Shown here one piece after another: positions 1,168-62,247 of a DNA stretch of 64,000 bases (the stretch's first letter is position 1; each line of letters opens with the position of its first letter). The notes below the pieces were generated by a model. That model saw only the letters and a program-made list of their open reading frames with translations, was not told the origin of the DNA and made no database searches. The position numbers and the translations under genes are program-made. Location of the stretch: sequence record OR455461.1. One strand, written 5' to 3'.

Positions 1168-3569
1168 TTATTTGAATAAATCCATAATACGTTTATTATT
1201 GTTGTCCATTGGTTTTTGTTGTTGACCAAATATAGAATTACTCATATCATTTCCTTCAATAACACTATTGATACGTTTTATTGAAGTAATATCTTTTCTT
1301 CTAGCTTCTTGTTCTTTTCTGATTCCTTCTGCATTTTCTCCGTTAGATGAGAGTTTAGAACCATATTTAATTTTTACAAATTTATTAATATCCTTTTCAT
1401 AATAATATGCATATAAACAGAATAAATAAGACATCATTAAGTCATCGTGACCTCCCGGTGGATGGTCAATACGTCCTTTAATCATTTGTAAAGATTTTAC
1501 TTCTTGGAAGAGTGCTTTATTATTAATTAAATATGGTTTTTCTTCAACAAGCATAGATAGTATTTCATTTAACATTATATCACGAGATTTTTTAGTTGTA
1601 TCAATACCATATCTACGAGTTTCTTTTTTAACTTTTTCATTTTTACCATATCTAGATACTTCATTAAATAAACCTTTATCTTCTACTTGTTTTTCAGCTA
1701 CACGAGTTTTAAGTGTATAGAATAGATTAGATTCTAAACCATCATAAGTTATCATATGATCAATTACTGTTAAACCTGCATAGTTACGTTCAGGTATTAA
1801 TATAGCGTTAGGTATATAGAAACTAACCAATTCTTTAATTAATTTTCTGAATGTAGGTCCATTAATTACGTTATTTTTAAATGTCATCACTGGTTCCAAA
1901 GTAGCTGGATCCACTACAGTAAATGCTGTATTATCTCGTCCTAAACCACCAGACATATCAATACCAATAAGCCAATTTTTCTCTGTAATATTATCCATAT
2001 ATTTAATCATATTTACATAATAAGTTTTTCCATCAATATTAAATTCAAGAGTATTATATACTTCCTTATTAGCATACATAGATATTTCAGACATTTGCTC
2101 TTCAGAGAATAATGAATCATCAGAACTATAAGCCCATTCCAATAATATTTCACGTTTAACTGCTTCTAAAGAACCAATTTGTCTTTTTTGTTTTGCTAAC
2201 CAATCTTCATCTTTACCTAATTCTTTATATGAATATTCTATATACATGAATTCATTATTTGAATTATCTTCCATGTATTTTTCTAATTTAGAAATTCCTT
2301 CTTCTTCACCATTAATGAAATAATCATATATTTTTTCATTCCATTGAGCTGCTTCATTCATTTGTTGAAAGAAAAATTGCCCATTGTCTTCATCAAGAGT
2401 ACTCAAATTTATTTATTCTTTATAATTATATAAAGTTTAGACTATATCACAATAATTATAATAATTATTATCCATTATTTAGTCGTTGAACATCATTTAG
2501 ATGATGCTGATTAATTTTATAATATTTCAGCAATTAAATAGAAAAGCCCAGTTAATTTTAGGCGTAGTTGTAATTAGAAGTCCATAAGGAGTTCCGTTTC
2601 TTTTAGCAATTGCAGAAGCTGTGGAGTTAGCTGGACGCATGGCCTCAAACATTGTTTGATTATGTTTAATAAATGCCCACTCATCTAGCCAGAATAATGG
2701 CACAGTACCACCTCTCATTTTTCGTTAACTATATGAATTTCATATAGATCAGACTATATCTTAACAATTTCAATGATATTAATATTTAGTCGTTGAACTA
2801 CTATTTTAAGTAGATGCTGATTTATTTAATGATTTTCTCAGCAATTAATTAATTTTATAGCGAGCTAAGGTTATAAATTAATTTTTAAAAATAATTTCCA
2901 TATATGCCATGGAATGATTTAACCCGCTTTATTTGCTTGCTCTTTATTGTTTGGAGGACTGACTGTCTTAATAGTGTTATTATTGGATGCTAATCTAAAT
3001 TCATTTTCAGCATCTTTATCATTCTTATCACCAAAATTTGCCATCACATAATCCGGTAAACATTTTTCTTTAAATAAGTTCTTAAGACGTTTTAAATTCT
3101 CCACTGTATCAGCATAAGCTTTATGTGTAAATAACATTGTATAGTTATTACCTACTAATAACATAATCCATGAATAATAACATACTGCAGAATATGTTTT
3201 ATAGTGCTGACGAGGTAACATTATTGCAGTATCTAAGTTATGCAACATACAGAATGTCATAGCCAAGTTACCTCTATGAAGTTCATACATTACTTTTCCA
3301 CCTGGAACAGGAACTCTAATAACTTCTCTTAAATAAAACCATATATTAAGTTTAGCTTCCCTAATAACACGAGTTTTCATTTCATTATCTAAATCTTCAT
3401 CCCAAGGATCAACACCAATTAATTTCTTATCATATAGAGTTAATGGTAAACCATAATTTTGTATATTATTGTCTTTAAGTTCTTTAGCAACTTTTAAAAA
3501 GCTTATATTATTAGTCTTATAATCGTAATAAACTTTTTTCTTTAATTTTGTTATAGCCATAATCTTCAT
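1168..3569 (-). CDS. terL: Terminase large subunit, 3 exons: join(3569..2922, 2715..2560, 2403..1168), about 679 aa
   Basis: Walker A-like PRQHYKT in exon 1. Junction KAG|RGGTVPLFWLDE restores the GRG/Walker B region. Junction LITTTP|STLD. Exon 3 has nuclease motifs IGIDMSGG..D and GGHDDL. Both junctions are in frame. Confidence 0.92.
2404..2559 (-). mobile_element. Group I intron terL-I2, 156 nt, no ORF
   Basis: P1 exon GCCU/GGGC with U-G at the splice site; P3 UCUAUU/AAUGGA; P4 UGCUG/CAGCA; R element GUUCAACGACUAAA; S element UGAUAUAGUCU; P9 hairpin; terminal G at 2404. Confidence 0.92.
2716..2921 (-). mobile_element. Group I intron terL-I1, 206 nt, no ORF, enlarged L1 loop
   Basis: P1 AGCGGGU/GCUCGCU; P10 ACCUU/GAGGU; P3 AUUAAU/AUUAAU; AAUUGCUG, AAUCAGCA, GUUCAACGACUAAA and AAGAUAUAGUCU core; terminal G at 2716. 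Confidence 0.93.
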
Positions 3570-8376: not shown

Positions 8377-9711
8377 ATGTCTAAAGATATTAAAGCTTAC
8401 ATTATTAATGAATCTAATACAACTTCTCAACCAGAAGTAGTTCAAGATAATAATAAATCAGTTAGATTCATTGCTGAGTTACAAGAAGCTGATAGACAAA
8501 ACCGTAATGGTCGTGTTTATCGTAAAGATGTTATCCAAAGTGGTTTAGATAGTCCAGTAGTACAAGAAAAATTAGCAAGAAGAACTTTTTATGGTGAGTT
8601 TTAGGTTAAAATGGCTCACGTTAAATTATATTAATTGCTGAAATCTTATTTAAAGTAATCAGCATCAACTTAATACAAGTTGTTCAACGACTAAATATAT
8701 AACCTAGATGATATAGTCTAATCTTTATTAAAATAATAAAGAATAATAATTTGCAGGTCATCCTTTAAGTGATGAACCTAAACGTCAAATGTATATTGAT
8801 CAACGTAATATTTCTCATATTATCACTAGAACTTGGTGGAATGGTAATAAATTAATGGGAGAAGTAGAAACAGCTCAAACATCAGCTGGTAAGGATATGA
8901 AAGGTTTAATTGGACAAAAATCTGATGTATCTTTCTCAATGCGTGGTTTTAGTAAAATAGAAAGAAAACCTAATGGTGAAGTAGAAGTTACTAAACCTTT
9001 AAGATTAATCTGTTAAATTATAGCAGCTTTATATAGTGATATATAATGAAAAAGAATATTAATTGCTAAGAAGTTTAATTAAGCCAATTAGCATCAACTT
9101 AATACAAGTTGTTCAACGACTAAATATATTCGCTCTTACTAAGAGTATGATATAGTCTCGTCTATATGGAAACCATATAGCTAAGATGTACGTATGACTG
9201 GGTAAAAAATTATTGCTTAGTATAAATAATATTAATTGCTGGAAATCTTTATTAAGATAATCAGCATCGGATTAAATTCCGTTCAACGACTAAATATATT
9301 ACCTAATATAAATTAGGAAGATATAGTCTCGTCTATATGAAAATCATATAGTTAAGATAACGTGTAATTCCATCACATCAAGATTCTTATATCCAAAATA
9401 TAATTTCAGAGAATCATAATAATTACAATACTAGTGATTTACAAATGGTTAATGAATCAATTGATATGTTTTCTAACGGTAAAGTTACAGAATTTTCTCC
9501 TAGAGAAGTTTTAACTTATATTAAAGAAAATTCAGATAATATCAAATATATCGCTGAAGATATGGGATTTGATAAAGCTGATGAATCTAATATCATTTAT
9601 GATAAAGGATCTCAAATAGCTTCAATTAAAGAAAGTAATAAAACTATTAAAGTTTTCTTAGAAGAATCTGTTCTTAATGGACTTGATGATTTCTATAGAA
9701 ACTTTAAATAA
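8377..9711 (+). CDS. Prohead core protease (T4 gp21-like), 4 exons: join(8377..8599, 8754..9013, 9193..9203, 9363..9711), 280 aa
   Basis: NRNGRVY; junction GE-S|GHP restores GExxHP (His); SFSMRG (Ser); LIC|YDWV|VIPSH restores DxVxxPS (Asp). Spliced length 843 nt = 281 codons. Confidence 0.92.
8600..8753 (+). mobile_element. Group I intron pro-I1, 154 nt, no ORF
   Basis: P1 GUGAGU/GCUCAC; P3 UUAUAU/AUAUAA; core AAUUGCUG, AAUCAGCA, GUUCAACGACUAAA, UGAUAUAGUCU; P9 CUUUAUUA/UAAUAAAG; terminal G 8753. Confidence 0.92.
9014..9192 (+). mobile_element. Group I intron pro-I2, 179 nt, no ORF
   Basis: P1 CUGU/GCAG; P10 UUAUA/UAUGA; P3 GAAUAU/AUAUUC; P4 UGCUA/UAGCA (compensatory change relative to the other six); P8 GCUCUU/AAGAGU; terminal G 9192. 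Confidence 0.92.
9204..9362 (+). mobile_element. Group I intron pro-I3, 159 nt, no ORF
   Basis: P1 ACUGGGU/GCUUAGU; P10 AAUUAU/GUAAUU; P3 UAAUAU/AUAUUA; P8 CCUAAU/AUUAGG; terminal G 9362 is the nearby G that restores the frame. Confidence 0.9.
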
Positions 9712-11255: not shown

Positions 11256-11924
11256 TTAGCAATAACTAATTGAATTATATTTTTCTATTAATTTGTTAAA
11301 TGTAATCGGACCAACGTCTCCATCTTGTTTAAGATTATTATCACTCTGAAACTGTAATAAAGAACTTAACATAGTTCTATCAAATACATAGTTTTTACTA
11401 TCGTATTTATTAGCAGAATACCCCAAACCTGTCAGTGCGATACCAACTGTATTAACATCATTACCTTTCATATTATCTTCCCTATACATTAATAATCTGT
11501 AATAGCTTCCTTTAAGATTTCTATTATTTGAAATAGATGGTTCTTCAGGTTTATATTTTCTAGGTAAATGCATATCATAGTAATAAGGAAATTTAGGATT
11601 ACCATTATGGAATTTAAGTATAACTTTATCATAAAGGTTAGGTTTTCTTAAAGGTTTATCTAAATCATTATTCATTAATGGTTGACAAATTAAATAATTA
11701 CCTATGTCTACTTGACTTCTTACATCTAGATCTTCTATATTTATTATATTATTAATATTTAGGTTTCTTTTGATATTTCTTGGGGAATCCTGCAATTCAG
11801 TCATAATAAGTTCATACACAAATAGCTTTACTTCATATGTTTCATCGAAATCTGTATTATCTATAACTACAGCTTCAAAGTCTCGACCAAAATCAAATTC
11901 TTTAAACGATTCTTTATATTGCAT
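11256..11924 (-). CDS. Baseplate spike/hub-like protein (gp5-type OB fold) with C-terminal peptidoglycan-binding domain
   Basis: N-term AVVIDNTD...KPNLYDKVILKFHNGNPKFPYY; C-term GNDV...LTGLGY...FQSDNNLKQDGDVGPITFNKL typical of PG_binding_1. Confidence 0.65.
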   Translation of the reverse strand: MQYKESFKEFDFGRDFEAVVIDNTDFDETYEVKLFVYELIMTELQDSPRNIKRNLNINNIINIEDLDVRSQVDIGNYLICQPLMNNDLDKPLRKPNLYDKVILKFHNGNPKFPYYYDMHLPRKYKPEEPSISNNRNLKGSYYRLLMYREDNMKGNDVNTVGIALTGLGYSANKYDSKNYVFDRTMLSSLLQFQSDNNLKQDGDVGPITFNKLIEKYNSISYC

Positions 11925-54966: not shown

Positions 54967-55611
54967 TTATAATAAACTAATAATTTTTCGAACGATTTTA
55001 TCAAAGATAGATTCTTGTTTTCCTGCTTTTTTAATATCTACATTATCACGATATTCTTTACCTGTTTCAGGATCTTTTTGAACATTTTGCATTTTATCTT
55101 TAATATTTTTAGCTTTTTCTTCTGTTTTATTTTTAAGACCTTCTGCTGCTTCTTTTGTTTTCTCTACTGTAGGTGATTCAACTACAGTTTCCACAGCTAA
55201 TTCTACTTTACTTGGTTTAACATCATCTCCACGTAAAATTTTCTTATATTCGTTAAATGTAGGATAACCTTCTTTAGCAAATCTATAATCTTCAGTTAAA
55301 TGTCCAAAATATTCAGCTCTACGAATATGAGTAATAGTGTGAGTTTTTCTTTCAGTTCCATATTTTTCTTTGAATTCTTTTAAGATGTAAGTATTACCAT
55401 GTCCTTTATCGATTAAACCAGCAATGAAGTGAACTTGCTCTTTAGTTAATTTTGGTGTACCTTTAGTAGTTGTTTGTTTTTTAGTCATTTTTGAATCATC
55501 CTTTTTATTATTTTTTGACAAATCTATAATTTTTTCGTTATTTGAGTTTTCTAATTTAATTTCTTTTTCTAACTTTTTTCTTTGTCGTTTATTCATGTCG
55601 CATTTCTCCAT
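54967..55611 (-). CDS. Basic protein with possible HTH
   Basis: LTKEQVHFIAGLI...TITHIRR; K/T-rich. Confidence 0.5.
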   Translation of the reverse strand: MEKCDMNKRQRKKLEKEIKLENSNNEKIIDLSKNNKKDDSKMTKKQTTTKGTPKLTKEQVHFIAGLIDKGHGNTYILKEFKEKYGTERKTHTITHIRRAEYFGHLTEDYRFAKEGYPTFNEYKKILRGDDVKPSKVELAVETVVESPTVEKTKEAAEGLKNKTEEKAKNIKDKMQNVQKDPETGKEYRDNVDIKKAGKQESIFDKIVRKIISLL

Positions 55612-56187
55612 TCAATTTAATAGTCTATCAATAAAAATATTATTGTTAAATGTATAAGCACCAGTATTATCTAATTTTTTATAATTAAAATTACTTCTAA
55701 TATATTTTCTAATTCTACTTTTAATGACATTTTCTAAGAAATTAGTTGTATTATATATTTCTGAAATTAATTCGTTTCTCCACTTATTAATTCCATCGGT
55801 TATATCATAAGTGCCAGTTATTCCTAATGATTCATTTTCATATTTATGTCCTAAATTTCCTCTATTAACGCTATATAAAGTATTTAAAACCATATTAAGT
55901 CTTTCAGCAAAAGTGTTACATAAAAATCTAGATATTTCATAATGTGTTGTAGTTAAAGTTACACTTACAACTTTATTAATATCATTGTTAACAATCTTTT
56001 TAATATGTTTTTTAGAATTATCTTTAAAACTGTTAGATTCTTTTATAATATCATTAATAATATCTTGATTAATATAATCCTGATCAATCTTAAGTAATTC
56101 TTTATAAATTTCTTCATAAAATATATCTAACGATTTTTCAGCCATATCGATTAAATTCTTTTCATTATTCTTTTTATATTTTATCAA
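55612..56187 (-). CDS. Hypothetical protein
   Basis: Long ORF. Confidence 0.7.
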   Translation of the reverse strand: MIKYKKNNEKNLIDMAEKSLDIFYEEIYKELLKIDQDYINQDIINDIIKESNSFKDNSKKHIKKIVNNDINKVVSVTLTTTHYEISRFLCNTFAERLNMVLNTLYSVNRGNLGHKYENESLGITGTYDITDGINKWRNELISEIYNTTNFLENVIKSRIRKYIRSNFNYKKLDNTGAYTFNNNIFIDRLLN

Positions 56188-56254
56188 TTCTATAAACCCT
56201 CCATATTTATAAAGTATAATAAGAATGGATAATCATAAAGATTATCCATTAAAA

Positions 56255-56455
56255 TTACTTATTCACTTTGATTGCATAATCATAAAGTATCAAAGCAGTA
56301 TTAAAAGCTATATTATCTAATTTATTAATTCCCCTTTTAATTCTACCAATTTTAGCTCTACTTATTCCAGTACATTTTTCAATTTCATAATTACTAATCT
56401 CTTTATTATTTAATAGTTTTTCTATCTCATATTTAACTTCTTCAGCTTTATTCAC
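56255..56455 (-). CDS. Small XRE-like HTH regulator
   Basis: ISNYEIEKCTGISRAKIGRIKRG. Confidence 0.7.
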   Translation of the reverse strand: MNKAEEVKYEIEKLLNNKEISNYEIEKCTGISRAKIGRIKRGINKLDNIAFNTALILYDYAIKVNK

Positions 56456-58120
56456 TAGCTTTAATACCTACATTTTTTGATTTAGGGTTATTTAGTAAAT
56501 AAACAGCTATTTGTGAGTCTTTATTAAGCGAGTAAGTTCTATTAAATAATCCATCATTATATGAAATTAATTGATTTACTGGATCTTGGACTTTTAACTG
56601 TTCGTATTGTTCTTCTGAAAATAGTGCTATGATGTTTAAAGTGTCACCATCATACGTTTATCTTAATCTATATAAATATTATCATATAGACGAGACTATA
56701 TCATTACCATTTAAGGTAGAATATATTTAGTCGTTGAACAAATTATATTAATTTGATGCTGATTAATTTAATAATCTTCTCAGCAATTAATATTCTTTTC
56801 TATAAATCTCTCAATTTAAAGCGACTATTATTTAATCGGCCATTTGTATTAACTTCATAGAGATTTTTCTATAAAGATTAGACTATATCAAACTCATATT
56901 AGTGAGTGAATTTATTTAGTCGTTGAACAATCATCTTGATTGATGCTGATTAATTTAATAATCTTCTCAGCAATTAAAATTCTTTTGACATTATATTACT
57001 ATAATGAAAGGCTACCTTTATAACCCATACCAGCAAGTATATTATTACTAATACCTACTACTGATGATTCTATATCTTGAATTATATCTTTAATTTTCAA
57101 TATTTGAACAGAGCTTTCACTAATTGAGGGATTTCTATTTAAAATAACTCTCATTCCATTTTCAGTTTTATCAACTAGTTCTCTCATATATTTATATACT
57201 TTAGGATTAAATGTATCTAATGCTCTGTCTAATATTTCTTCACCTTTAGCTAAAGGAATATTTTCTGTTACATACATTAAATTTGCTAAGATAGGTTTAT
57301 ATACTTCTAAGAAGATAGTGTAATTTAATCTGATTTCATTTAATTTAAGGTCAGGTGCTGGAACAATTACTGAACGTGCAGAGAAACCAACACGACTACC
57401 CATTAGTAATTTACGAATAGTTCCACCTTTACCTTTAATATTCTCATTAATTACACGATCACTAATATTAATACTATCATTCTGAATTTTACTTAATAGA
57501 TTTAATTTTTGTAACTCCACTGAATCATCTGTATAATGTCTATCAAGTTCTTTAATACTATTACTATGTGCAATTAATAAATTATAATCTTTATTAATTT
57601 CAGAATGTCTAAAAGTTTTAGTAGCTTTGTTAACTGTAGCAGGTCTTAATTTAGGACTAAATACAGTTACATAATTTTGGAATAGTAAATCAGATAAATA
57701 CCATTGTACTACTCTATTGTAATCTTTAGTTTTACGTTTATCACGTTTAACTTCTTCTTTAAGAATTTTTAAGAAATTCTTTCTAAATTCAATTAAACCA
57801 ATATAAGAGTTATGATCATCTTCAGGTTCAATTACATTACCATTCTCATCAATAGGTTTTTCAGAACTAATAATTTCTTGGAATCTTTTATTACCAATTA
57901 ATTTTTTAACACGTTCATATCCTAATGGATTTAATATATAATTATTACCTAAATCTACAATAGCTTCATTAGTAATATTATCTGCTTCTGAATCAGGACC
58001 GAAGATTTTTTCACTGAAAATACCATCTTCAGTGAAATCTCCTTTTTTATCTATTGATTCATGATTAGTTACAACTGGAACATTTTCTAAATCCTTTTTC
58101 TTGAGTAAAAATCTAACCAT
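56448..58120 (-). CDS. rpoC: Non-virion RNA polymerase beta' subunit, N-terminal part, 3 exons: join(58120..57023, 56840..56835, 56654..56448), 436 aa
   Basis: DGIFSEKIFG, MGSRVGFSARSVI, LNRNPS. Splicing gives LAGMG|AD|YDGDTLNII, the catalytic DxDGD motif. Close to AR9 nvRNAP beta'N from recall. Confidence 0.93.
56655..56834 (-). mobile_element. Group I intron rpoC-I2, 180 nt, no ORF
   Basis: P1 CGAU/GUCG; P10 AUAAUA/UAUGAU; P3 AGAAUAU/AUAUUCU; conserved core; terminal G 56655. Confidence 0.92.
56841..57022 (-). mobile_element. Group I intron rpoC-I1, 182 nt, no ORF
   Basis: P1 GGGU/GCCU; P2 CAUUAUA-GUAA-UAUAAUG; P3 GAAUUU/AAAUUC; conserved core; terminal G 56841. Confidence 0.92.
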
Positions 58121-58123
58121 AAC

Positions 58124-59746
58124 TTAATCTTCTCCCTCTTCTACAATTTCTTTAATGTCCATAACAACTTCTTGATCATCATTTTCTTTCTCTAATTTAT
58201 CAATATTTTCAATATCTTCAATTTCTTTGATATTAGGTTTATTTTCAAAATAGAATGAACCATTTTCACCAGGATCTTTAACTTCACAGAAAGGTGTTAA
58301 AGTACGAGTAATACCTGGATTATTTGATGAAGTAGCAATCAAATCAATTCTACCGAAATAAGTGTTATTGATATTGATTGTTCTAATAGATGGTTTACTA
58401 GTGTCTACAGCTGATTGTGGACCTGCTTTAGTCATTTTAAGAATTCTAGTAAATAAGTCAATTGTATTAACTGCATTAGAATAACGTATACCGTCAGAAG
58501 TTCCAATAGTCTTCAATAGATAATCTCTAGGTACTCCTGAGAATAATCCTTTAAGATTTTTAATTGTACGTTTTTTATCTGAGAAGTTAATCATACGATA
58601 TGAAGTATCAGAGTTTTTTCTATTCAGTGGATAAGTTAAATATTCTAATACTCTTAAACGTTTATTAGCTAAATCTGTATTATCTAATAAGTTAAGATTA
58701 TCAAAGTTCTTAAACATGTATTTAACCACATGATAAGTTGATTCTTTATCTTCTGATTCTAATCGTGATATAGCTTGAGTACGACTATCTAATATACGAT
58801 CAAATGAAAGTATCATTGAATTCGCTTTATCTATTTTAGTGTCAATATTAGTTGAACCACTGAAGATAGAACCTAAAGCTTTTAACCAGAATTCTCTATC
58901 GTATATTTTATCTAATCCCGCTCTCATTCCTTTGAATAAATCTTTAATACAAAGGATCATAGAATTTCTATAACGATCATCAACGTCTAACCATTCTTTT
59001 TCAACTTTTAAAGAAAGTTTATTATTAATTTTAAAGTAATAGTAATTATCTTCTTTTTCATCATTAATATCTATTACTTTACAATGGTCTTTAATTTCTA
59101 AGAATTCAAATGTTTCATCAAATCCCATTTTTGCAACAAAGAACATAAATGCTGGAACACTCTTATTTTTATTGAACACTTCTAGATATAGAGTTCTTCC
59201 TCTTTGGACATTATTCATCTTATTATCGTCATCCATAATAGTATCTTTTTTAGAACCATTGACTGATAGTGGTTGCAATAAGTTTTTCATTACTACAGTA
59301 CTAGCTTTTGGTTTATAAAATTCAGCATCTGCTAATTGTAGAATTGGGAAAAATTTGTTATTATTAATATAGTAGTATTGACCTTCAATAAGTTCAGGGA
59401 AATCTAATTTGTGTGTATATTCTTCTTTATTACCTTCTGAATCTTCAAATTCTACTGTAATTTGAACTTCTAGTAATTTAGATTCCTCAACATTAATTTT
59501 TCTGTAATCTTTAGATTTAAGTTGTTTATCTGTCATTTGATTAAATTCATAAACCTGACTTGGTGAAACGACTTTACAATCTAAGAATTTAATTCCTTTA
59601 ATAAATTCTACTGATCTATAAATGTCTGAAATGATTTTTTCTAAACTTTCATTTTGTCTGAAATAGATTACGTCTTCGTTAAATGGTTCTTTTTTGCTAA
59701 TGTCTTCGTTGATGTTCTTTGTAACTTTACTTAAGTATTTACTCAA
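58124..59746 (-). CDS. rpoB: Non-virion RNA polymerase beta subunit, N-terminal part (540 aa)
   Basis: FPELIEGQYYYINNNKFFPILQL, LANKRLRVLEYL, FGRIDLIATSSNNPGITRTLTPF; adjacent to beta'. Confidence 0.85.
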   Translation of the reverse strand: MSKYLSKVTKNINEDISKKEPFNEDVIYFRQNESLEKIISDIYRSVEFIKGIKFLDCKVVSPSQVYEFNQMTDKQLKSKDYRKINVEESKLLEVQITVEFEDSEGNKEEYTHKLDFPELIEGQYYYINNNKFFPILQLADAEFYKPKASTVVMKNLLQPLSVNGSKKDTIMDDDNKMNNVQRGRTLYLEVFNKNKSVPAFMFFVAKMGFDETFEFLEIKDHCKVIDINDEKEDNYYYFKINNKLSLKVEKEWLDVDDRYRNSMILCIKDLFKGMRAGLDKIYDREFWLKALGSIFSGSTNIDTKIDKANSMILSFDRILDSRTQAISRLESEDKESTYHVVKYMFKNFDNLNLLDNTDLANKRLRVLEYLTYPLNRKNSDTSYRMINFSDKKRTIKNLKGLFSGVPRDYLLKTIGTSDGIRYSNAVNTIDLFTRILKMTKAGPQSAVDTSKPSIRTININNTYFGRIDLIATSSNNPGITRTLTPFCEVKDPGENGSFYFENKPNIKEIEDIENIDKLEKENDDQEVVMDIKEIVEEGED

Positions 59747-61596: not shown

Positions 61597-62247
61597 TTAA
61601 CTAAATAAAGAATTTATAAATATAGATCTATATTCTTTAATTGTAATTTCTTTATTATAATTGAAGAATATATTTTTAGACTGCTTTAAAGTTAAAAAGA
61701 ATTCAGCTAATGTTAATGCTTTAAGATATTGCTTTTCATTGTCTCTATTTTGTTTAAATAAATTAATGAATATATCTTCAATTCCTATTTCTTTAAAATT
61801 GTCTATATAGAATTCTTCTTTAATATCCTTCTCTACATATGGTACTTTAGTTATTGTAAAATATGAATTATTAGTTTTAACTAAATTATTTGAATCTAAT
61901 AAATCATCTATTTCTGGTTCAGTAAGACTATTAATTTCTTTAAAATCTCTGAAATTATTTACTTTTTTAATATTCTCTTTTATTAAATTTAATGTCTGAT
62001 GATTTACTATTTTACTATAAAAATTCATAGTAGTTCTTTCATTTGAGAATATATTTTCCTCCAATATTAAAGAATAACTAGCATTATTAATCATTAAAGC
62101 ATTACTATTTTCTGTAATATCCAATTGCTTTTCAATTTGTTCCATTATATCTTTATCGTAATCTATAAGTAGAACAATTGTGTTTAAATTCTTTTTATAC
62201 GTATTCCTAGATCTTTTTTGAAAATTAATTAAGTACATTATAACCAA
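61597..62247 (-). CDS. Hypothetical protein with C-terminal tag (ITIKEYRSIFINSLFS)
   Basis: ORF plus tag. Confidence 0.72.
   Translation of the reverse strand: MVIMYLINFQKRSRNTYKKNLNTIVLLIDYDKDIMEQIEKQLDITENSNALMINNASYSLILEENIFSNERTTMNFYSKIVNHQTLNLIKENIKKVNNFRDFKEINSLTEPEIDDLLDSNNLVKTNNSYFTITKVPYVEKDIKEEFYIDNFKEIGIEDIFINLFKQNRDNEKQYLKALTLAEFFLTLKQSKNIFFNYNKEITIKEYRSIFINSLFS

Follow-up and report, generated by a model that had tools for sequence, protein, structure and literature searches.

The DNA analyzed here, a window of 64,000 nucleotides (nt), belongs to the Staphylococcus jumbo phage AH12 (OR455461.1), to which it is 100% identical over the 1.9 kb tested; every window base overlapping the pieces of the AH12 record that we fetched agrees with the record, and window position 1 equals record position 62001. 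The gene that encodes the N-terminal part of the β′ subunit (β′-N) of the non-virion RNA polymerase (nvRNAP) lies on the minus strand and starts at position 58120. Its exon 1 (57023 to 58120; 1,098 nt, 366 codons) encodes the Pfam domain RNA_pol_Rpb1_2 (E value of 5.5e-07), shows 85 to 99% amino acid identity to β′-N of related Staphylococcus jumbo phages, and ends with the residues NNILAGMG (GGTATGGGT, to 57023) and the bases GGGT, after which the frame enters foreign sequence and stops. It is followed, always on the minus strand, by the group I intron A of subfamily A (56841 to 57022; 182 nt), the micro-exon GCCGAT encoding Ala-Asp (56835 to 56840; 6 nt), the group I intron B of subfamily B (56655 to 56834; 180 nt), and exon 3 (56448 to 56654; YDGDTLNIIALF...IKASE). 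Neither intron contains an open reading frame (ORF), and the final base of both is G (56841 and 56655). The micro-exon serves intron A as its 3′ exon and intron B as its 5′ exon. Exon 3, whose DNA opens with TATGATGGTGAC, comprises 68 codons plus the stop codon at 56448 and is colinear with the gene of the related phage Madawaska. Read on the minus strand, the region is ...CTTGCTGGTATGGGT / TATAAAGG...CAAATG / GCCGAT / TAAATAATAG...TAAACG / TATGATGGTGAC. The first codon past the micro-exon, in intron B, is UAA. Both introns are phase 0, and loss of the 6 nt keeps the frame. The β′-N gene is single-copy in the AH12 genome, and its spliced product would have 366 + 2 + 68 = 436 amino acids, a length identical to that in Madawaska.

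Intron-less alleles fix the splice junctions

The junctions of introns A and B were set by comparison with intron-less alleles and are independent of motif guessing. Madawaska has an unbroken gene of 436 codons (...NNILAGMGADYDGDTLNIIALF...), phage LY01 reads ATGGGTGCCGATTATGATGGTGA without an insert, its DNA (ATGGGTGCCGATTATGATGG) being base for base that of the joined AH12 exons, and phage PB50 reads GGTATGGGTGCAGACTATGATGGT ahead of an intron of its own, without an insert at the A and B sites. All three alleles yield an unbroken GMG-AD-YDGD. The Ala-Asp codons are GCAGAC in Madawaska and PB50 and GCCGAT in LY01, and only GCCGAT can both pair with GUCG and end in U. The comparison alone allows a micro-exon of 6 or 7 nt, since intron B and exon 3 both begin with T; it is fixed at 6 nt because group I introns follow a U at the 5′ splice site and have G as their last base.

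Phage Machias carries both introns and an identical GCCGAT. As it was isolated on another continent and assembled independently, an assembly artefact could be ruled out; a second copy of the β′-N gene as the source of the arrangement was ruled out by its single occurrence in AH12. The combination of A and B was found only in these two phages, which are 97 to 99% identical here. Eight of 10 relatives have neither intron at these sites, by direct reading for PB50, LY01, and Madawaska and as judged from blastn coverage for MarsHill, S6, PALS_2, DC4, and SA1. A search of IMG/VR with exon 1 gave no relatives. A metagenome pattern scan with the junction of intron A end, micro-exon, and intron B start (TGGCNGAYTAAATNATAG), which sought diverged alleles with covariation of micro-exon and guide, gave chance matches only, none of the 120 loci having an intron core, and it revealed no allele with A alone or B alone.

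The micro-exon encodes the first aspartate of the catalytic loop

The Madawaska sequence GADYDGD aligns with SGDYDGD of the β′ chain of the solved AR9 nvRNAP (7s00_d/7s01_d; E value of 5e-70, full length), and Madawaska β′-N also matches bacterial β′ chains across the catalytic-loop region. Exon 3 of AH12 aligns with AR9 nvRNAP β′-N (7s00_d/7s01_d) as well. The Asp residue of the micro-exon is the first one of the D-x-D-G-D loop, here D-Y-D-G-D, whose three Asp residues bind the catalytic Mg2+. A first-pass annotation of the window had proposed that a 6-nt exon between two introns of ~180 nt supplies Ala-Asp with this residue, that an intact motif needs both splicing events, and that skipping, both introns being phase 0, would give an in-frame MG-YDGD. 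The intron-less alleles placed this exon at exactly these coordinates, the alignment to AR9 confirmed the residue, and the 366 codons of exon 1 agree with the phase; the dependence of the motif on both splicing events likewise held.

Introns A and B have a covarying group I core

Both introns have a 5′ exon U paired with G, a terminal G (...CAAAUG at 56841 in A and ...UAAACG at 56655 in B), and a core of helices P3 to P9. The classical P, Q, R, and S elements are present in both (AAUUGCUGAGAAG, AAUCAGCAUC, GUUCAACGACUAAAUA, and GAUAUAGUCU). The core of the R element (CAACGACUA), which forms the 5′ strand of P7, lies at 56917 to 56925 in A and at 56728 to 56736 in B, and the S element ATATAGTC at 56881 to 56888 and 56694 to 56701, respectively, all on the minus strand. 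The covariance model R1, built from ten copies of the intron family to which A and B belong, scored A with 145.7 bits and B with 154.3 bits and detected 32 copies across the genome of AH12, of which the window holds seven.

In the alignment of the 32 copies, 97.2% of the cells are paired, versus 78.2% in shuffles and 26 to 46% with slid partners, and 22 of the 35 pairs are altered on both sides. Five of the six P3 pairs change on both sides and the sixth on one side only, with variants such as GAAUAU/AUAUUC, AAUUAU/AUAAUU, UUUCAU/AUGGAA, and AAUCUU/AAGAUU. Since the P3 pseudoknot could not enter the model, the alignment was not fitted to P3. Covariation is seen in P3, P6, P8, and P9, whereas P4 and P7 hardly vary, the P7 pairs being the same in 31 of 31 copies. 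The covariation across the 32 copies supports the P3-P9 core including the P3/P7 pseudoknot. Folds of the single sequences yield P1, P2 with GNRA loops, P4-P5, P6, P7, P8, and P9, with minimum free energy (MFE) z-scores of −3.3 (intron A) and −2.6.

All eight substitutions between the AH12 and Machias introns are structure-neutral: GUAA became GUGA in L2 with the GNRA loop kept, A-U became G·U in P6, U·G became C-G in P9, and the others sit in loops or the tail. The introns diverge at 3.3% and 1.1% of sites. Exon 1 shows 29 differences, and all 15 that were listed fall on third codon positions; if the remaining 14 do so too, ~8% of third positions differ. The low divergence of the introns and the maintenance of their pairs argue that the ribozyme folds are under constraint. 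Together with the location in an essential, single-copy gene, these structure-preserving substitutions suggest that the introns are active in self-splicing.

Four of the six micro-exon bases belong to P1 of intron B

The internal guide sequence of intron A, GUAGCCU (57009 to 57015, minus strand), pairs with GGGU of exon 1 (57026 to 57023) and with UAU of the intron, giving a P1 of 7 bp in which GGGU stands opposite GCCU with U·G at the splice site. In intron B, the guide is UAGUCG (56822 to 56827, minus strand), where GUCG pairs with bases 3 to 6 of the micro-exon (CGAU), again with U·G at the splice site, while UA is matched to the two opening bases of the intron. The U·G pair is present in both introns, and their splice sites were fixed separately by the intron-less alleles. 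The output of an automatic P1 finder contained much noise, the sequence being rich in A+T; of the pairings, only those in agreement with the comparatively fixed splice sites were used, and the guide that the finder assigned to the upstream intron of the virion RNA polymerase (vRNAP) β′ gene, which is described below, was wrong.

P10 of intron A with the micro-exon has 0 bp in register against GUA, and 3 bp (GCC/GGU) after a shift by 1 nt. Relatives of subfamily A have a P10 of 0 to 1 bp, the range in the family being 0 to 7 bp, and the in-register match of intron B to exon 3 amounts to 3 bp. Such pairing of the guide with the 3′ exon is frequent among group I introns but does not occur in all of them. 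The P1 pairing CGAU/GUCG of intron B proposed earlier proved correct. The further claim that the six bases must serve both introns was overstated: four of the six are used in P1 of B, and P10 of A contributes no pair in register.

Introns A and B were inserted independently at an insertion hot spot

Verified copies of the family are 149 to 212 nt long and ORF-less, and the Rfam gathering threshold misses the two copies tested. In AH12, they cluster in genes for RNA polymerase subunits, terminase, protease, nrdE, and gyrB and in other genes. Searches with blastn gave 26 family matches in AH12, 26 in Machias, 25 in LY01, 22 in PB50, 13 in Madawaska, and 11 in MarsHill, and none in S6, PALS_2, DC4, and SA1. 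A pattern scan of IMG/VR for the R...S core signature found it widespread in large viral contigs and detected no further micro-exons, tandem matches being at least 369 nt apart.

In a tree of 30 full copies, A and B fall into different clades. Intron B clusters with the second intron of the protease gene and a clade from 134 to 138 kb (support of 89/95 and 97/87). Intron A joins, with weak support (38/82), the upstream vRNAP β′ intron and the copies at 232.6, 237.2, and 237.8 kb; the firmer tie among the copies of subfamily A is a common 5′ segment, [U/A]AU..A..G.CCUUU[C/A]AUUAUAGUAAU. Members of subfamily A always follow GG(U/C), as in AUGGGU^, CUUGGC^, UUAGGU^, ACUGGU^, and UAUGGU^ (the caret marks the intron site). 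The combination CGAU^ and GUCG recurs in intron B, the gyrB intron (GCCGAU^), the intron at 237.0 kb (GCCGAU^, 6 bp), and the intron at 11.9 kb, and the GUCG guide is present in more than one clade. As A and B belong to different subfamilies, they were inserted independently. A tandem duplication was ruled out by the different clades and by the differing P1-P2 regions and 3′ tails.

Among the relatives, three intron sites lie within 15 nt of the sequence encoding the catalytic loop: G^AD and AD^Y in AH12 and Machias, and YDG^D, 9 nt downstream of the site of B, in PB50 and AR9. The YDG^D intron of PB50 (L005, 3690 to 5421; site equivalent to window position ~56646) has an ORF for a homing endonuclease of 504 amino acids upstream of a family-like core (UUAAUUGCUGGGA...GUUCAACGACUAAAU...GAUAUAGUCU); in the best P1 that could be drawn for it, the exon U appears opposite A, not G. 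The AR9 intron at this site carries the HNH gene g271, and there the coding sequence (CDS) is joined. In contrast to these two, introns A and B (182 and 180 nt) lack the endonuclease ORF of a mobile group I intron that brings its own homing enzyme. LY01 has a family intron ~100 nt upstream in β′-N, at RVILNR^NPSIS (L004, about 2066 to 2224), with a very short 3′ tail past P7 and no obvious P9.

Other small exons and the annotation of these phages

Tandem family introns enclose further small exons in AH12. On the plus strand of the window, the gene for a prohead protease/scaffold protein contains an 11-nt exon, TATGACTGGGT (9193 to 9203), between introns at 9014 to 9192 and 9204 to 9362, and a third intron at 8600 to 8753. 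The exon was confirmed by the intron-less gene of DC4 (...PLRLIC YDWV VIPSHQ...). The Machias protease gene has four exons; its CDS is joined from three pieces, and the 11-nt exon was missed. In the paralogous vRNAP β′ gene of AH12, introns at G^ADFDG^D leave a 15-nt exon, GCTGACTTTGATGGC (ADFDG). This pair (L127, 11381 to 11725, in the AH12 record; minus strand; exon at record positions 11530 to 11544) reads ...SYAQALG / 181-nt intron / GCTGACTTTGATGGC / 149-nt intron / DMISIRSLW and was again confirmed by intron-less DC4 (GGT GCAGATTTTGACGGT GAT). Both vRNAP β′ introns follow a C, with A as the opposing guide base, which suggests that a C·A wobble replaces the usual U·G at these splice sites.

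From P1 pairing and frame continuity, we predicted exons of 16 nt (ACTCAAGAAGGTGGGT; L131, 7975 to 8320; record ~232.5 to 232.8 kb, exon at ~232.63 kb), 24 nt (TCTCCACGTATTGGAATGACTGGT, encoding SPRIGMTG of an RNA polymerase β subunit; L131, 12502 to 12915; record 237.0 to 237.4 kb, exon at ~237.19 kb), and 18 nt (ACTTACATGTTAAGAGGT; L129, 28496 to 28871; record 154.0 to 154.4 kb, exon at ~154.2 kb). A probable second 11-nt exon, AACCATCAGGT, lies at ~135.27 kb of the record on the minus strand, flanked by an upstream family copy and another intron. Several of the AH12 small exons are not multiples of three. The family copy at L129 9777 to 9913 (record 135277 to 135413, minus strand; AAUUAAAGAGCUUCAACGACUA...) has P3, P7, P8, and P9 and apparently lacks P4-P6; if the gene it interrupts is essential, this copy would have to splice without P4-P6 or with help in trans. 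A second aberrant copy was seen at L129 11184 to 11321.

On the minus strand of the window, two introns (2921 to 2716, 206 nt; 2559 to 2404, 156 nt) cut the large terminase gene into ORFs at 3569 to 2919, 2718 to 2527, and 2406 to 1168. In the first of these introns, the P1 loop holds an additional long hairpin. According to Korn et al., TerL could not be reconstructed in these phages. Next to β′-N in AH12, an ORF of 66 amino acids with a GTG start (56255 to 56455, minus strand) overlaps the β′-N stop codon and has a helix-turn-helix-like sequence; it is missing here in Machias, whose match to AH12 ends ~150 nt earlier.

The GenBank β′-N CDSs of AH12 and Machias end at the stop codon inside intron A, the Machias CDS being unjoined, and the micro-exons of 6 and 11 nt, as well as those of 15 to 24 nt as we read them, are absent from the GenBank annotations checked (the β′-N and protease CDSs). 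In the literature on these phages, we found no description of micro-exons or of the ORF-less mini-intron family. Because the micro-exons are unannotated, essential genes, among them those for RNA polymerase subunits, protease, and terminase, are annotated as fragments. This systematic annotation gap concerns ORF-less introns of 149 to 182 nt with ~32 copies in AH12, which escape the Rfam threshold.

Origin and splicing of the tandem introns

The explanation we favor, with a probability of about 0.8, is that two ORF-less group I introns of ~180 nt were inserted independently 6 nt apart and that the micro-exon is a by-product of this crowding. Intron A would fold alone, with GGGU of exon 1 held by the guide GCCU, and intron B would do the same with CGAU of the micro-exon and the guide GUCG. 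The excision of each presumably takes the usual course of two guanosine-dependent transesterifications, and the mature mRNA, GGU/GCCGAU/UAU, would encode an intact active site. As the gene is single-copy and the Asp residue essential, accurate double splicing would have to be the main constitutive outcome. The crowding itself may stem from the habits of the family of ~32 mini-introns, whose subfamilies follow short words complementary to their guides, GG(U/C)^ in subfamily A and CGAU^ in B and several others. The sequence AUGGGU^GCCGAU^UAUGAUGGU^GAU by chance offers three such sites in 15 nt. Spread directed by the guide might proceed by a process resembling reverse splicing or by endonucleases acting in trans. 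The 11- and 16-nt exons in the same genome would cause a frameshift if skipped, and the micro-exon therefore looks like a result of intron crowding.

Several points weigh against this explanation. An Rfam scan of 3 kb (55500 to 58500) gave no match, and on a slice of 401 nt the model RF00028 (Intron_gpI) scored B with 36.9 bits (E value of 5e-8) and A with 24.8 bits (E value of 2e-4), matches that span model positions 1 to 253 and have significant E values but both stay below the gathering score of 50 bits; this shortfall is probably due to the small size of the introns and their G+C content of ~23%. The natural self-splicing group I introns known to us have ~200 nt or more, and none of them is as small as the members of this family (149 to 182 nt); members of 149 to 159 nt would be unusually small if they splice unaided. 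The family also lacks peripheral elements such as P7.1/P7.2 and, being so small besides, may need a protein or other copies to assist it. That the introns splice, in which order, and how faithfully is what we infer from sequence. Intron A has no P10 in register with the micro-exon that would account for the choice of its 3′ splice site. Endonuclease-driven homing followed by adaptation of the guide would fit as well as guide-directed spread, GUCG being present in more than one clade.

The first-pass annotation had suggested that the micro-exon could act as a switch between active and dead or dominant-negative late RNA polymerase, set by splicing fidelity. In such a splicing switch, a regulated fraction of transcripts would skip the exon and yield a full-length β′-N without the first catalytic Asp, which would tune or poison late transcription. 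The 6-nt length, the phase of both introns, and the in-frame product of skipping (GMG-YDGD) fit this idea. Introns A and B moreover have the same 38-nt P4-P5 block and the same P7 strands, and a chimeric outer intron would therefore be topologically possible, in which the 5′ half of A is combined with P7′, P9, and the terminal G of B and the rest is looped out at P8. UAU of exon 3 pairs in register with GUA beside the guide of A, which the micro-exon does not; a 3-bp match is expected by chance at ~5%, so that this pairing is near chance. Exon skipping has a precedent in the Staphylococcus phage Twort with similar tandem introns, as cited at second hand in PMC3073962. Skipping is physically plausible, and accidental skipping at a low level is quite possible. 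A regulated switch, however, is improbable. It would be limited to AH12 and Machias, 97 to 99% identical here, whereas PB50, whose protein shows 99.4% identity to that of AH12 in the final 159 residues of exon 1, and the seven other intron-less relatives, two read directly and five judged from coverage, do without it. A and B are independent insertions, and the frameshifting exons of 11 and 16 nt between similar tandem introns show no design for in-frame skipping. Cotranscriptional local folding should favor each intron's own P7, the centroid fold of the 401-nt region keeps the helices of each intron local, and a dominant-negative catalytic subunit would be costly. Slightly less probable still is the specific form in which a ratio between two folds, two ribozymes versus a chimeric outer ribozyme, sets the fraction of assembly-competent but dead β′-N. 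Were it true, the dead fraction would brake or time late transcription or act as a poison subunit in coinfection, the ratio perhaps being set by folding kinetics, temperature, Mg2+/GTP, or translation, and alternative splicing at the active site of an enzyme would then be regulated through group I introns.

Somewhat less doubtful, though still unlikely, is an obligatory ordered or cooperative splicing that would make the tandem pair one composite element. It could arise from the shared C at base 3 of the micro-exon, which would be used by the shifted P10 of A and by P1 of B, or from mispairing of the near-identical cores, whose long identical stretches invite cross-pairing; the MFE fold of the whole 401-nt region indeed holds some long-range pairs. 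In the centroid fold of this region, however, both P1 hairpins and both sets of core helices form locally and at the same time, the relatives in its subfamily suggest that A can do without P10, and either order of splicing gives chemically ordinary intermediates. A dead or decaying gene in AH12 and Machias, with the inserts as relics and the 6 nt without a role, would agree with the truncated GenBank CDS ending in intron A, with the Rfam scores below threshold, and with the degenerate look of a few family copies elsewhere. We consider it very improbable, as this is the only β′-N copy in the genome, both phages are plaque-forming isolates, all 15 listed of the 29 exon 1 differences are at third codon positions, exon 3 is in frame and conserved, and the intron substitutions keep pairing with the splice-site signatures intact.

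Relation to known systems and significance

Among known cases, the closest system is the AR9 g270 intron, the closest architecture that of placozoan cox1, and the closest behavior that of Twort orf142. The Twort introns are said to be ~250 nt long, of subgroup IA2, and equipped with P7.1/P7.2, and we know of no 6-nt exon in Twort orf142. In Bacillus phage AR9, the orthologous gene g270 (nvRNAP β′-N) is interrupted in the same catalytic loop (D-Y-D-G^D), but by a single large ORF-bearing intron (HNH g271) at another site and without a micro-exon; the endonuclease-containing intron of PB50 shares this G^D position. The mature mRNAs of AR9 were determined experimentally (Korn et al.). For the phage group studied here, Korn et al. 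described that RNA polymerase, protease, polymerase, terminase, and gyrase genes are often interrupted by introns with variable exon numbers, the exons being predicted by protein alignment. Like AH12, Twort is a staphylococcal phage with related tandem group I introns in one gene, three in the case of orf142, and transcripts missing an internal exon were reported for it (Landthaler and Shub, 1999, PNAS 96:7005; both as cited at second hand in PMC3073962). In placozoan mitochondrial cox1, a micro-exon arose when a second group I intron inserted beside an existing one: a single-nucleotide exon between two group IB introns preserves an essential His that acts in catalysis or as a ligand and was missed by earlier annotation until splicing intermediates revealed it (PMC5436844). 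That system differs in being organellar, in its large introns, one of which is trans-spliced, and in an exon of 1 nt without a final U (PMC5436844).

What is new in AH12 is that several features come together in a phage: an exon of 6 nt that carries a catalytic residue, two introns of ~180 nt without ORFs, a genome with ~32 such introns, and an unannotated series of micro-exons. We found no exon shorter than GCCGAT proposed for any gene of a phage or bacterium. GCCGAT offers a natural system for the minimum exon that a group I intron can use, here with a P1 of 4 bp and essentially no P10, and the tandem look-alike introns A and B offer one in which mispairing and exon skipping can be tested. 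Since the exon carries a residue that the enzyme needs, the viability of the phage would report the accuracy of two ribozymes that share six substrate bases.

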